A stretch of 44,630 nucleotides of DNA from Octopus bimaculoides (GCF_001194135.2 NC_068986.1:64280904-64325533), one strand, 5' to 3'; positions 10,179 to 43,496 are shown, counted from the stretch's first letter. Numbers and translations are program-made. The notes: a model not told the origin generated them from the letters alone.

Positions 10179-10319
10179 CTTCTACTGTGCAGTTTTCGCC
10201 ACTAAATTGGGGCTTACAGTTGCAGATAAAACCATCAGAAGGTGTCGGTGTACATACGCTTCTGTCGTTGCAAGGATTTAAACGTACACAAGCACTCAGC
10301 TTTTTCTGACACAAGTTTC
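10179..10319 (-). CDS. Exon completing EGF13 and encoding EGF14 (141 nt, phase 1-1)
   Basis: Acceptor tttatcatttcag at 10320, donor AAG|GTAAGT at 10178. Translation (G)NLCQKKLSACVRLNPCNDRSVCTPTPSDGFICNCKPQFSGENCTVE. Confidence 0.9.
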
Positions 10320-10640
10320 CTGAAATGATAAAGTGATGTTTTAGTATAATTACACACATGCATGTAATATATATATATATACCTTTTGAAATATGTATAA
10401 TCACTTCTTATGTTAATAGAAAGACCAAATTATTTGGAGGAGTATTGTCAGTTGATTTAACTTTAATACATGACTAATATTTATCTCACTGACACAGGAG
10501 GCTTGAAAGAAGAAAAAAGATCAACAGTGGAATTCCTAATTCAGAGAATGTAGAAGGACGGAACTTAATACTCTAAAGAATTTGATTCTACGCTCTACCG
10601 TCTCCAAAACTCCATTCCTCTTATATATATATATATATAG

Positions 10641-10815
10641 TGATAGGTTTCAAATATTGACACAAGCCTAGCAAGTTCGAGGAAGGGGTAAGTTGATTAC
10701 ATTATTGACCCTGCTGCCCAACTGGTACTTATTTTATCGACTCAGAACATACAGACAGACCAAATGCTACTAAGCATTTTGACCAGTGTGCTAACGATTC
10801 TGCCAGCTCGTCTTA
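10641..10815 (-). mobile_element. SINE family B copy flanked by cttatata...tag direct repeats
   Basis: Family-B reverse complement (internally deleted) between direct repeats at 10620-10640 and 10812-10830. Confidence 0.8.
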
Positions 10816-10914
10816 TATATATATATATAGTAATAATATAACAAAAAAAGAATGAATGAGACCTCTCTATTATGTAAATAGAGGAATTTGTAATATAGTA
10901 TGTGACAATTATTC

Positions 10915-11489
10915 GGTTGCCATAATAAAACTCCGAGTTTCGAATGTTGGGGCGGAAATCTGCTCCGGCATCTCGTCAGTTATTAAGACAAACAAAAACG
11001 CTATGAAAATGACCGTTAAACAAAGGGAAATTAGTATGTAAATGACCCTTTTAAGAAAAGCAAAAGAGCTATTAGAATGACCGTTAAATAAAGGGAAAAA
11101 AACCCGAAGGGGAGAATGTAAAAAATGCTCATAGAATTCGCGTATGCGCGCATGTACATACATACACATGCGCGCAAGCACACCCACGTACATGTGCCCA
11201 TAAGCATTTGCTCACGCGAGTGTGGGTGAGCATATGCATATAGGCACATGTACGTGGGTGTGCGAATTCTATGAGCGTTTTTTACTTTCTCCCCTTCGGG
11301 TTTTTTCCCATTATTTGACGGTCATTCTAATAGCTCTTTTGTTTGTCTTAATAACGGTCATTTACATAGTAATTTCCCTTTGTTCAATGGTCATTTTCAT
11401 AGCATTTTTGTTTGTCTTAATAACTGACGAGATACCGGAGCAGATTTTTCGTCCCGACATCCGAAACTCGAAGTTTTATTATGGCAACC
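10915..11489. repeat. Long fold-back palindrome (about 263-bp arms, 10-nt loop), right end lost in a gap
   Basis: Left arm 10915-11215 (with a 38-nt insert) is the reverse complement of right arm 11226-11489, about 90% identical by eye. Confidence 0.95.
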
Positions 11490-40034: not shown

Positions 40035-40373
40035 GAGGATAGGAAGAAACGAGGTAAGAGAGATGGACGTTTTCCCTATTAATATCTGTAATCAATTGCT
40101 CATTCTCTCCCGCAACTGGGCCTTAATCTTTGAGGATAAGGGATAAAATTAGAAAGGTTTCATGACCTCTACTGACCGACCCGAAGTCATCTGTGTGTAT
40201 GTGTGTGTGTATGTGTGTAAGTATGTGTGTGTATGTGTGTGCGTGTGTGTATGTTTGTGCGTGTACATATATGTAATATGAGTGCAACGGTTATAGCACA
40301 GCTAATGAACTATAACTGAGTCATGACTACTACTTTCCCGAAAACAGTTTTGTGAATAGTTTCGTTTGCTCAC

Positions 40374-40994
40374 CTGGTAGACCGACAATTTTGATATTAA
40401 CTAATGCCCATGCCGCCTTTGGCGGCAAGCCGTTATCTGATACCTTCACCGTGAAGTTGATATCCTTGAGATCAAGCCGTAACGTATCATTGAGTTGAAG
40501 GCGACCGCTGTGTTTATCTAAAGATAGAATTGGATATTTTTGTTCTAGTATCTCGTAAGTAATCTGTCTATTATAGTCTTCTTTGGAATCATCGGTGGCG
40601 TTTAAATAGCCGATGATCTTGCCAGGGTTTTCAAACTGAAAGACTAAGAAAGAATATAAAGATTTTGAAAATTGTGGCGCTTCTTTGTTGTTTTCAACAA
40701 CATCAACCAAAAGCTGACGATTTCGAAAAGTGTTTCCATTGAAAGCTGCTCGTATATTCAATGCGAACTGATGACCAACAGGTTTGTCTATAGCTGTCAT
40801 TGTACTGATTTCACCAGAGTGTTTATTAATCATGAAATATTCATTCGTCAGTTCCCCCTGAGTGAACAGCTGGTAAGATACAGCTTTCTCTTTGGTGTCA
40901 TTGTTATACCCTACTACCTTTCTCACAAACACACCAGCCACCGCACGTCTGTAAATCCTTGCGTTTGGTGTAACTCCATATATGTCTTGGACGG
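40374..40994 (-). CDS. Exon encoding two cadherin-like repeats (621 nt, phase 1-1)
   Basis: Acceptor tttcaatcttttccag at 40995, donor CAG|GTGAGC at 40373. Cadherin hallmarks: YQL..EYFMINKHSGEIST, APQFSKSLYSF, NATDD, ITYEI..LSLDKHSGRLQL, FTVKVSDNGLPP..ALVNIKI. Confidence 0.9.
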
Positions 40995-42995
40995 CTGGAA
41001 AAGATTGAAATAAGGAAATAAACGTTAGTTTTGAAATATATATAAATTAAAAATAATGATTTGTCAAACGAGAAAGCTTACACAGACAAGAACACACATG
41101 AAATGTTTACATACACGTATATATAAGCTCACAAAATTGCTCACAAACACACACACACACGCANNNNNNNNNNNNNNNNNNNNNNNNNNNNNNNNNNNNN
41201 NNNNNNNNNNNNNNNNNNNNNNNNNNNNNNNNNNNNNNNNNNNNNNNNNNNNNNNNNNNNNNNNNNNNNNNNNNNNNNNNNNNNNNNNNNNNNNNNNNNN
41301 NNNNNNNNNNNNNNNNNNNNNNNNNNNNNNNNNGCAATTTAAAGAGGTTGCAGGTGCACAAGAATATGTGACGTGTGATTCAATAAATTGATTGGTAGTG
41401 ACTGTTTCATCTGCAGTTGTGTCTAGCCATTGGCTTTTCTGTGAGAAACTCTTCTCTACCCCAATAGGTTTAAGTTTACGTTCTGTTGGGTGCCTCCACA
41501 CTCTCCTTATCAGTGAACTGGTTTAGTCACCGATCACTCAACCATGAAACAGGTAGTATGGGACTACATGGTACCTGTGGCAGATAAAACCGAGCCTGAG
41601 ACACACACACACACGCACATACACACACACGCACATACACACACGTAAATACACACCATGTAAACACACAGCAAGCAAACACATACATACATTCATGCGC
41701 GCACGCACACACACACACATTCATTTATTGTTTCCATTTGAAGACAACGCTAATTTTGTTTATTTCGATTCCACGTGAAGTGTTTCCCTCTCTTCTGCTT
41801 TCTCCCCTTTCTCCCATCTCAGAAAACTAATGTGAAACAGTAATTTAAGTATATGAAGGAGAATCGTCTCAAGTGAAATATAGACCTAAATTATTGTGCT
41901 CAGGTAACTCTCTTAATATTTACACATTTCAACTAAATTCCCATTAGCATGTTTAACAATTTATCAATCTTACATAGATACACCCGCACACATATTCATA
42001 CTTACACATACAGACACAGTCACACTATCATTGTTATAATCATCAACCTTGATCGGAAAAACGTAGGCTTTCCTTTTCATTTCACCACCCTGAAATATTC
42101 GAAATCATCTTTGGAGGTAGGTTGTTCCTTCAGATAATGGGTAGAAAATAATGTACTAACTTTTAGTGAGCTTCCTTTATATACAACGGCTATCGATAAG
42201 TTACATAATAAGGTCACGTGGACCTCATTTTGATTGCTAGTGTTAATACACCGTCTTATGTGACACCGCCACTTTGTCCTTGCGTACCTTTGACAGAATT
42301 CACTTTATTGCAATTATTCGGACCAGATCTCTTTTTTTCCCGGGCCAACCACATTTTCACCCATTTCCTCAAAGACTAACTCAGAGATCTTTAAACTGAA
42401 CATCAGCTAGATTAGTTTCACTAGTCTGGGAGGGCCCGCAAAGTGCATGGGTAATGCCCTACCTTTTTAAATTAAATTATCCTTAGACTTACCCCACCCC
42501 CACTCAAATAAAACAAAATGCAATTATGATATCAGTGATGACAAGTGTTATGCTGTTTACATCTATCCGCGTTTCTGTCACTTATGAATATATGCAGCAG
42601 CAAAAATTGCAACAGGTAGGTGCAGATAAGTCAACCAGCATTGATAAGATGCTATGTTACTTGGTGTGCAAATAAATATACGTACCACATACATAGTACA
42701 TAAAATCATACATACATGCATACATACAAACACACACACATGCGCGCGCATACACACGTATGTATGTATGTATGTAAATATGCATGAGTATATGACCACA
42801 TACACACACACACACACGCATATGTAAATGAATATCTATTCCGATTCATTTGAATAGTTTTGTTTTTTTTGCTTGAACATACATATATAAATTGAATGAT
42901 TATTCACACACACACTGACACACAGGCATACACTCACAGCACAGAGGCACAAACGTTATGAAAAAAACAAACAAAAAACTGAAAACCTAACTTAC

Positions 42996-43071
42996 CTATT
43001 GTTGCCACCGTATAAACACTGAGCAAATAGAGGCTGGAATAGAGCAACTGCCTGGTAATCCGGTGATTCAT
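42996..43071 (-). CDS. First coding exon: signal peptide MNHRITRQLLYSSLYLLSVYTVATI
   Basis: Acceptor ttcttttttcctatcag (exon starts 43084), 13 nt of UTR, caaaATG context at 43071. Basic N-region followed by a hydrophobic core. Perfect donor AG|GTAAGT at 42996/42995, phase 1, matching the next exon. Not in the ORF track (too short). Confidence 0.8.
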
Positions 43072-43496
43072 TTTGACAGCCAATCTGATAGGAAAAAAGA
43101 ACATTTTTACATCCAGCTACATTCGTTGGTAAACGTACAGTTTCAAAGAGAGTTGCAAAAACAGATAGACACATGTGGTAAACAGAACTCCTTCCAACCG
43201 TTCGAAGATCAATTAACAGATGTCTCGATGGTTGCTGGTTTGAACTCAATCGAACTTGGGTTCGCTCAAAATATTTCAAAGTTAGAGGATGTTTAATCAT
43301 ACTGTAGTAAATTAGACATCGTCTTTTCTTTTTTCTTTGTTATGTCAAATAATAGTGAAAACAACTTGGTCGTGAGAAAATCTTTTTTTCTTTTTACGAC
43401 GGTGGTGAATGGTACGTTATTCCTCTGAAGAATTGAAATAACCGTAACTTCCATAGCTTGGTTCGATGAAATCGGGAGTGATGGTCGTATATGTAC

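Follow-up and report, generated by a model that had tools for sequence, protein, structure and literature searches.

We analysed a window of 44,630 nucleotides (nt) from the genome of Octopus bimaculoides (GCF_001194135.2, NC_068986.1:64280904-64325533; positions are counted from its first letter) and conclude that five exons on its minus strand very probably encode the N-terminal part of the ectodomain of LOC106867596, a G protein-coupled receptor (GPCR) of the adhesion type from a protostome family that has the domain layout of Caenorhabditis elegans FMIL-1. The five exons join in frame, each bordered by canonical AG/GT splice sites and with all junctions in phase 1, and the join translates to 873 amino acids (aa), or to 862 aa if the second ATG is the start. 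It is identical to residues 1-873 of isoform X1 of LOC106867596 (XP_052824787.1). Exon 5 runs into a splice donor without meeting a stop codon, and the protein therefore extends past the window. An earlier note, made from this DNA alone, had taken the same exons to be a self-contained extracellular protein of 862 aa starting at the second Met. The exons and the 862-aa product were recovered exactly where that note had placed them, but the protein proved not to be self-contained: exon 5 has no stop, and the exons for a HormR-like module, a GAIN domain with its GPS and a seven-transmembrane (7TM) domain lie outside the window.

The receptor half of the gene was recognised through database proteins. 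A word-indexed homology search with exons 1-3 gave no match. An exhaustive HMMER search with the non-EGF part of the join gave three informative proteins, which cluster look-ups named as O. bimaculoides XP_014768001.2 (‘adhesion GPCR L4 isoform X3’, 941 aa, 100% to the query; P0001), an O. vulgaris protein called ‘ADGRE1-like’ (1461 aa, 91%; P0003) and a protein from a decapod cephalopod transcript assembly (1066 aa, 44%; P0084). Isoforms X1 and X2 of LOC106867596 (‘uncharacterized protein LOC106867596’) share a cluster with the O. vulgaris protein. The full-length O. vulgaris protein (1560 aa) and the translated decapod mRNAs open with a signal peptide and two cadherin repeats, continue with an FN3-fold domain, an EGF run and a HormR-like module, and close with a GAIN domain bearing a canonical GPS (H-L/T, where the slash marks the predicted cut), the 7TM domain and a tail of ~110 residues. 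Pfam 7tm_2 was matched at E=2.9e-40 in O. vulgaris, 4.9e-42 in the decapod protein and 1.5e-16 in the truncated O. bimaculoides X3, and the full-length proteins matched Pfam GPS (E=4e-9 to 2e-11) together with GAIN/GPR128_GAIN_subdomA. The GPS motif, CESTHL/TSFSVL, stands ~30 residues upstream of the first transmembrane helix (TM1), and the HormR-like module has four cysteines, with HRM as its top but sub-threshold Pfam match (E=8e-4 to 0.05 in four species). When the GAIN-7TM half was compared with the PDB, all the top matches were adhesion GPCRs. The protein thus has the features of a class B2 adhesion GPCR: a GAIN domain and GPS before TM1, a 7TM domain of the secretin type (PF00002) and a long multi-domain ectodomain on the same polypeptide. 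Two intronless Logan contigs from decapods each contain a single open reading frame (ORF) that runs from the signal peptide to the C-terminal tail and is preceded by an in-frame stop (SRR20545809: 5984 nt, 1665 aa; ERR4030425: 3678 nt, 1066 aa). As each contig holds the complete receptor in a single frame, the 7TM domain is carried on the same mRNA as the cadherin end.

The ectodomain encoded in the window begins with a signal peptide in exon 1, which was called by inspection of the sequence and by conservation: the end of the exon, MNHRITRQLLYSSLYLLSVYTVATIA/VQD, corresponds to the conserved MNPWITSQVVYLSIYLLAVYTGIVTG/SD in the decapod mRNAs. As the decapod mRNA contigs have an in-frame stop upstream of the homologous Met, the N-terminus is complete and the protein has two cadherin repeats only. 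Pfam recognised two Cadherin stretches in exon 2 (E=2.8e-16), and a phmmer search of the PDB with the pair (EC1-EC2) returned cadherins only. On octopus exon 3, Pfam fn3 was not reached even at E=1. An AlphaFold (AF2) model of this exon, built from an alignment of four cephalopod sequences, was moderate and consistent across models (pLDDT 71, pTM 0.63), and in a Foldseek search against the PDB its top 50 matches were nearly all FN3 domains (TM-scores 0.5-0.64, E about 0.006-0.02), among them those of LAR, titin, the common gamma chain, Tie2 and POMGNT2. This structure search used the single-domain model only; a model of the whole 292-aa N-terminal region was poor (pLDDT 61, pTM 0.37). The positionally equivalent domain of the spider proteins described below passes Pfam fn3 (39.6 bits, cut-off 25). 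From the model and this spider equivalent, we accept a predicted FN3 fold for exon 3. Pfam and a count of six-cysteine units agree on 14 EGF repeats, of which 0/14 carry the calcium-binding EGF consensus; the O-fucose pattern C-x(4,5)-[ST]-C occurs in nine of these stretches and the O-glucose pattern in two. Pfam found no LamG domain in the protein, and EGF_laminin appeared only at E=0.043, under its cut-off. The layout proposed in the earlier note, namely a signal peptide followed by two cadherin repeats only, then FN3, then 14 EGFs, in a gene that is not Fat, canonical Celsr, Notch or protocadherin, is therefore borne out.

The cysteines of the FN3-type domain form a pattern of their own. 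Those at join residues 249, 260 and 294 are conserved across the four aligned cephalopod sequences, and a count of the cysteine pattern places one additional cysteine directly after the domain, either within EGF1 (in the long form; compare residue 335, at the start of exon 4) or as the first cysteine of exon 5 (in the form that skips exon 4). The pattern suggests an interdomain disulfide that would be kept in every splice form.

The family is not confined to cephalopods. A profile search with the HormR-GAIN-7TM region matched proteins of the gastropods Littorina and Pomacea at 43-44% identity and of chelicerates at 36-45%. Gastropod and spider models truncated at the N-terminus had suggested that the cadherin-FN3 module was a cephalopod-only gain on an EGF-HormR-GAIN-7TM receptor, a view overturned by longer members of the same clusters. 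These are a Littorina saxatilis protein with Pfam Cadherin, EGF, GPS and 7tm_2 matches (XP_070193768.1, 1778 aa; P0210) and two spider proteins called ‘ADGRG6’, from Trichonephila and Nephila, with Cadherin, fn3, EGF, GPS and 7tm_2 matches (GFY43436.1 and GFS34575.1, 1547 and 1524 aa; P0217 and P0218). The octopus Cad-Cad-FN3 region aligns with the Littorina and spider N-termini as a single collinear block (BLASTP E=5e-25 and 1e-18; phmmer 1.4e-27 and about 1e-19). The gastropod and chelicerate orthologues thus resemble the octopus protein in both halves, which are collinear with it (Cad-Cad-FN3 E=1e-18 to 1e-27; 7TM 262-323 bits), and in the GPS motif: H-[LM]-T is kept in all the mollusc and chelicerate orthologues checked but P0171, in which the pattern searched for had no match. 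The spider orthologues differ from the octopus protein in having 5 EGFs, one of them of the calcium-binding type. The 7TM score stood above 430 bits in cephalopods, at 309-323 bits in gastropods and at 262-288 bits in chelicerates, and fell to 146 bits for a sea-urchin ‘GPR126’ and about 80-113 bits for vertebrate ADGRG2/4/5/6.

Since a gastropod and spiders have orthologues of the same layout, the gene is not cephalopod-specific, and a family with this fixed domain order is found in cephalopods, a gastropod and spiders. The earlier note had supposed a mollusc- or cephalopod-specific protein, which these collinear orthologues and the description of FMIL-1 with the same order contradict. Its forecast that automated pipelines might call the gene notch-like or fibropellin-like failed in octopus, where the RefSeq names are those given above, and came true in spiders. 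The gastropod and chelicerate orthologues are uncharacterised predictions with inconsistent names (G6, G4, G2-like, notch-like, hypothetical), and three Trichonephila fragments of the spider orthologue (P0214, P0215 and P0219) are named ‘neurogenic locus notch(-like) protein 2’. Two of these, P0215 and P0219, were matched by the octopus cadherin-FN3 module and so are N-terminal fragments, and they share a 90% cluster with the GPCR half.

The closest described counterpart is C. elegans FMIL-1 (‘Flamingo-like 1’, U4PMB9; 1029 aa), which consists of Cad1, Cad2, an FN3/Ig-like domain, EGF, HormR, GAIN, 7TM and a 100-aa unstructured tail, is presynaptic in PVD neurons, where it is sufficient for synapse induction, requires every ectodomain module for its function and neither the tail nor GAIN cleavage, and binds UNC-40/DCC in vitro (bioRxiv 10.64898/2026.09.01.748526). 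Its domain order, as its authors describe it, is that of the octopus family, and its length is near that of the decapod single-EGF isoform (1066-1072 aa). The two differ in that FMIL-1 has one EGF, compared with 14 in octopus (3 in X3) and 15 or 1 in decapod mRNAs, and in that FMIL-1 has a glycine at the GPS cleavage position and works uncleaved, whereas the mollusc and chelicerate proteins keep H-[LM]-T, with the exception of P0171. We infer orthology to FMIL-1 because the domains come in the same order, the short isoform is of similar length and another ecdysozoan lineage also has the family, so that by architecture as described the octopus family would be the FMIL-1 family. The earlier note had held that a characterised full-length orthologue of the same layout would undo its reading; FMIL-1, in a 2026 preprint, largely provides one, by architecture.

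Among vertebrate receptors, the best-scoring solved relatives of the octopus GAIN-7TM half are ADGRG6/GPR126 (1.2e-58), ADGRG2/GPR64 (2e-55) and ADGRG4/GPR112 (2.4e-48), followed by ADGRD1 (1e-44) and ADGRL3 (4e-42), with L4 (1.2e-29), E5 (1.7e-23) and E1 (2.2e-20) as weaker PDB matches. In ADGRG6 the HormR-GAIN-7TM core comes with a canonical GPS and a TxFxxL-type tethered agonist, and the ectodomain is CUB-PTX-SEA, without cadherin, FN3 or an EGF array. Because the 7TM score falls from at least 260 bits among the protostome orthologues to about 80-146 bits among deuterostomes, the vertebrate ADGRG proteins are best placed, on these scores, as a related clade and not as orthologues. The EGF-TM7 receptors (ADGRE5/CD97 and ADGRE1-3) and ADGRL4/ELTD1 resemble the octopus protein in having an EGF run upstream of GAIN-7TM, and CD97 and EMR2 use alternative splicing to vary how many EGFs they carry. 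They differ from it in that their EGFs are mostly of the calcium-binding type, in lacking cadherin and FN3 domains and in their much weaker 7TM matches, and the names L4 and E1-like, given in RefSeq and ENA, are the least supported by score.

CELSR/Flamingo (ADGRC) receptors are the only well-known adhesion GPCRs with cadherin repeats, and the octopus protein could in principle be a shortened member of this subfamily, left after a nine-cadherin ancestor lost repeats and LamG domains. It combines cadherin, EGF, HormR, GAIN and 7TM as CELSRs do, CELSR1 gave the top total score for the cadherin pair in the PDB (1.3e-28), and the authors of the FMIL-1 study place their protein in the CELSR subfamily from its domain content (bioRxiv 10.64898/2026.09.01.748526). 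However, the CELSR1 score adds up nine repeats, and taken singly its best stretch (3.3e-08) falls behind the best of Cdh23 (1.2e-10). CELSRs are proteins of roughly 2600-3600 aa with eight or nine tandem cadherins, interleaved LamG and laminin-type EGF and no FN3, whereas the octopus protein has two cadherins, no LamG, no laminin-EGF above cut-off and an FN3 domain that has no counterpart in CELSRs. Its HormR-GAIN segment matched ADGRG1/G3/G2/F1 and left the CELSR1 ectodomain entry 8vy2 unmatched up to E=10. By score ranking, which is not a phylogeny, the best named database relatives of its 7TM domain were ADGRG2/4/5/6 and the sea-urchin ‘GPR126’, with no CELSR at E<1e-20 in a comparison set that held no CELSR 7TM sequence, and none of the 150 cadherin matches was a CELSR/Flamingo protein with a detectable 7TM. 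Overall, a shortened CELSR seems to us an unlikely account, and membership of the FMIL-1-like protostome family remains the preferred one.

We also weighed the earlier proposal that the five exons are a self-contained gene for a secreted or membrane-anchored cadherin-FN3-EGF protein, which database models would have fused with a neighbour. Only ectodomain exons lie in the window, the RefSeq models are computational, and spider annotations split the same gene into ‘notch-like’ and GPCR parts, so pipelines do mishandle such loci. Against this, exon 5 ends at a phase-1 consensus donor with no stop, the intronless contigs of two decapod samples have the cadherin end in the same ORF as the 7TM domain, and the fused layout recurs in the independently annotated genomes of O. 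vulgaris, Littorina and two spiders. The separate-gene proposal is thus largely refuted and very improbable, while a minor soluble isoform could still arise through alternative polyadenylation.

Joining of unrelated loci by scaffolding over N gaps, for which one could cite the ten gaps in 44.6 kb, several with microsatellite flanks, and the damage to the O. bimaculoides models farther downstream in the 7TM domain, is the least probable account of all, as the order, orientation and phase of 5/5 exons agree with the independent O. vulgaris assembly and with the decapod mRNAs and EGF13 is correctly completed across the junction of exons 4 and 5. The assembly gaps overlap 0 exons, and the two nearest stop short of an exon edge by 170 nt and 282 nt. 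The O. vulgaris protein, from an independent assembly, is identical to the join at 820/873 residues (94%), and the only indel between them, of 2 aa, falls within exon 2. Neither this protein nor the decapod mRNA translations have an indel at any of the four exon junctions, so no exon has been lost within a gap. EGF13 is split over the junction of exons 4 and 5, and since exon 5 supplies its sixth cysteine (C6), the 21.8-kb join has independent, protein-level support beside that of the reading frame. At several gap edges there is a (CA)n, (TA)n or (GA)n microsatellite, and simple repeats are probably where the assembly broke; the long ‘inverted repeats’ that span gaps are N runs pairing with N runs and not genuine sequence. 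Beyond the window, the current O. bimaculoides models (XP_052824787.1, XP_052824788.1 and XP_014768001.2; P0156, P0154 and P0001) stop abruptly past the third transmembrane helix (...VAWGEYYPCFIQHIILLVCPRRQK), and an older model (XP_014768001.1; P0151) has odd read-through sequence where O. vulgaris has FPALIVAITLAVDLKNYKTPPEYC. The O. bimaculoides assembly probably lacks one 7TM exon or holds it in damaged form.

The EGF run varies in length between transcripts as well as between lineages. In one decapod species, proteins of 1072 aa (P0162) and 1665 aa (P0163) differ solely by an exact deletion of 593 residues, the breakpoints of which (...WKEA/VDKG... and ...FFQ/GEFC...) are homologous to the boundaries of octopus exon 4. 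This exact excision indicates that the exon encoding the EGF array is an alternatively spliced cassette. In octopus, RefSeq X3 (P0001) diverges from P0156 past ...PDGYVG, where an internal consensus donor lies at the end of the ‘GYVG’ motif of EGF2, and the X3 splice keeps EGF2 up to its fifth cysteine (C5) and continues it in register with exon 5, which supplies the closing cysteine. The resulting forms have 1 EGF (decapod short mRNA), 3 (octopus X3 model), 14 (octopus X1 model) or 15 (decapod long mRNA), and by arithmetic the total cysteine count is even in the long, X3 and full-skip forms. By lineage, octopus has 14 EGFs and the spider 5, while decapods and Littorina have 15 each. The idea that the array is an octopus expansion was rejected on these counts, and the 15 EGFs of Littorina mean that the long array is common to cephalopods and a gastropod. 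Among molluscs, the cephalopods and the gastropod examined have a stalk of ~14-15 EGFs, mostly encoded in one symmetrical exon. Compared as sequences, these transcripts and models show a stalk whose length is switched by splicing, and the switch would probably change the reach of the receptor by tens of nanometres. Two decapod proteins (P0163 and P0164) also have, around residues 735-830, an insertion of ~80 residues in the EGF array relative to octopus, which holds a highly basic, cysteine-free stretch (...RGSAKAFLKNMKIKTRWRRKRAVTSVKKG...) within one EGF and might be a furin-type site or a linker.

A working model of the receptor can be drawn from these features. The cadherin-FN3 tip would bind a partner on another cell or in the matrix, with the EGF run acting as a stalk or spacer. 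The N-terminal fragment would stay held on the GAIN domain, through which a pull on the fragment, or a rearrangement induced by ligand, would be transmitted; the tethered agonist (TSFSVLL...) would then be exposed to the 7TM domain, and the 7TM domain would signal via G proteins. What is seen in the sequence is the order of the domains, the variants made by splicing, a conserved H-[LM]-T GPS and a Stachel of the TSFSVLL type. Fragment retention, activation by force or ligand and the spacer role of the EGFs are proposed because they are established adhesion-GPCR biology, and autoproteolysis at the GPS is predicted from the catalytic consensus H-L-T. More broadly, and tentatively, since we place it a little short of an even call, the Cad2-FN3-EGF-HormR-GAIN-7TM receptors (FMIL-1 and the mollusc and chelicerate proteins) may be a distinct, ancient protostome family, with no shortened CELSR among them and with a 7TM domain nearest to ADGRG2/4/6. 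In the examined cephalopods and gastropod, the single symmetrical exon of ~13 EGFs may be spliced as a length switch, between a short, FMIL-1-like form and one several tens of nanometres longer, of a synapse-organising receptor in animals with large nervous systems.

Several points weigh against parts of this account. The receptor half is known from database proteins and from other species, tblastn mapping nothing past residue 873 into the window, and the O. bimaculoides RefSeq isoforms X1-X3 are computational predictions that are all three truncated within the 7TM domain. The link to FMIL-1 consists of domain order, length and ecdysozoan presence, compared by description. FMIL-1 has no cleavage threonine and works without cleavage or tail, and the tethered-agonist step may therefore not apply to the family. 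A neural, synapse-organising role for the octopus gene would be a guess, for which FMIL-1 is the sole basis. Finally, the tip may differ from a classical cadherin: by inspection of the alignment, the EC1-EC2 linker, DxNDNxP in classical form, reads ENNKEAP in octopus (ENNKEAPQF in place of DxNDNxPxF) and QMNREKP or RKNTDRP in decapods, the DRE motif reads DKP or NQT, and ATDD reads ATDQ in decapods. The calcium-binding motifs of EC1-EC2 thus look degenerate, which makes binding of the classical cadherin type doubtful.

The positions of the exons and of the other features of the locus are collected in Table 1. The window is AT-rich (37% GC), with many microsatellites. No additional EGF-like or other coding exon was found in positions 1-10178 or in the 21.8-kb intron 4, and Rfam and tRNA scans across the window gave no match. 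A dispersed repeat is present in at least six copies in or downstream of the introns of the gene; it is ~400-450 nt long, contains a (CA)n tract and is conserved in its 3' half (TTCTTTCAGTTTCCGTCTACCAAATCCACTCACAAGGCTTTGG...), and it looks like an element of the short interspersed nuclear element (SINE) type, with no tRNA or Rfam match. A second dispersed repeat (families D7 and D8) is about 150-160 nt long and occurs in 4-5 copies with 61-78% identity.

Table 1. Features of the analysed window of O. bimaculoides (a slash marks the exon border in splice sites).
Feature	Position	Strand	Details
Exon 1	42996..43104	-	ATG at 43104 (RefSeq X1) or at 43071 (X2; matches decapod start); signal peptide; phase-1 donor ATAG/GTAAGT
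Exon 2	40994-40374	-	acceptor TTTTCCAG/ at 40994; donor CCAG/GTGAGC at 40374; two cadherin repeats
Exon 2, first part (EC1)	40681..40994	-	Pfam PF00028
Exon 2, second part (EC2)	40374..40680	-	Pfam PF00028, best stretch at residues 127-208 of the exon translation
Exon 3	35292-35038	-	acceptor GTTGCAG/; donor GCAG/GTGAGT; predicted FN3-fold domain with three conserved cysteines
Cysteine sites at residues 249, 260, 294	about 35277-35275, 35244-35242, 35142-35140	-	in exon 3
Cysteine site at residue 335	33605-33603	-	start of exon 4
Exon 4	33623-32130	-	acceptor CTTCTAG/; donor GAAG/GTAAGA; 1494 nt, phase 1-1; EGF1-12 and EGF13 up to C5
Exon 4a (short exon 4)	33387..33623	-	internal donor GTTG/GTGAGT, last exon base 33387; 237 nt, phase kept; RefSeq X3
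Intron 4	10320..32129	-	21.8 kb; four assembly gaps, SINE-like repeats, microsatellites
Exon 5	10319-10179	-	acceptor TTTCAG/; donor GAAG/GTAAGT; sixth cysteine of EGF13 and constant EGF14; no stop codon
SINE-like repeat copies	3010-3400, 12690-13060, 14560-15010, 24868-25240, 29634-30080, 38950-39320	+	
D7/D8 repeat copies	5098-5505, 6591-6768, 20266-20417, 28020-28197		
Gap edges at microsatellites	2133, 14335, 30504, 35574, 38004, 39461, 43829		

Overall, the gene was already predicted in octopus under inconsistent names and a worm member of the same layout has just been characterised, so it is no new kind of protein, and nothing found here indicates a cephalopod-specific innovation. Interest remains in the cassette of ~13 EGFs common to cephalopods and a gastropod, in its splicing and in the placement of the family among adhesion GPCRs. 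For annotation, at least five conflicting names (ADGRL4, ADGRE1-like, ADGRG6, ADGRG4, G2-like, notch-like, uncharacterized) are gathered under one family, whose ectodomain layout is fixed. That cephalopods, a gastropod and spiders share this design sets the synapse work in the worm in an evolutionary frame: the mollusc and chelicerate versions keep the canonical cleavage site, and cephalopods and a gastropod add a long EGF stalk, which is spliced in or out in decapod transcripts. The family thereby offers natural variants, with 1, 3, 5 or 14-15 EGFs and with a cleavable or non-cleavable GPS, for testing what stalk length and cleavage contribute.

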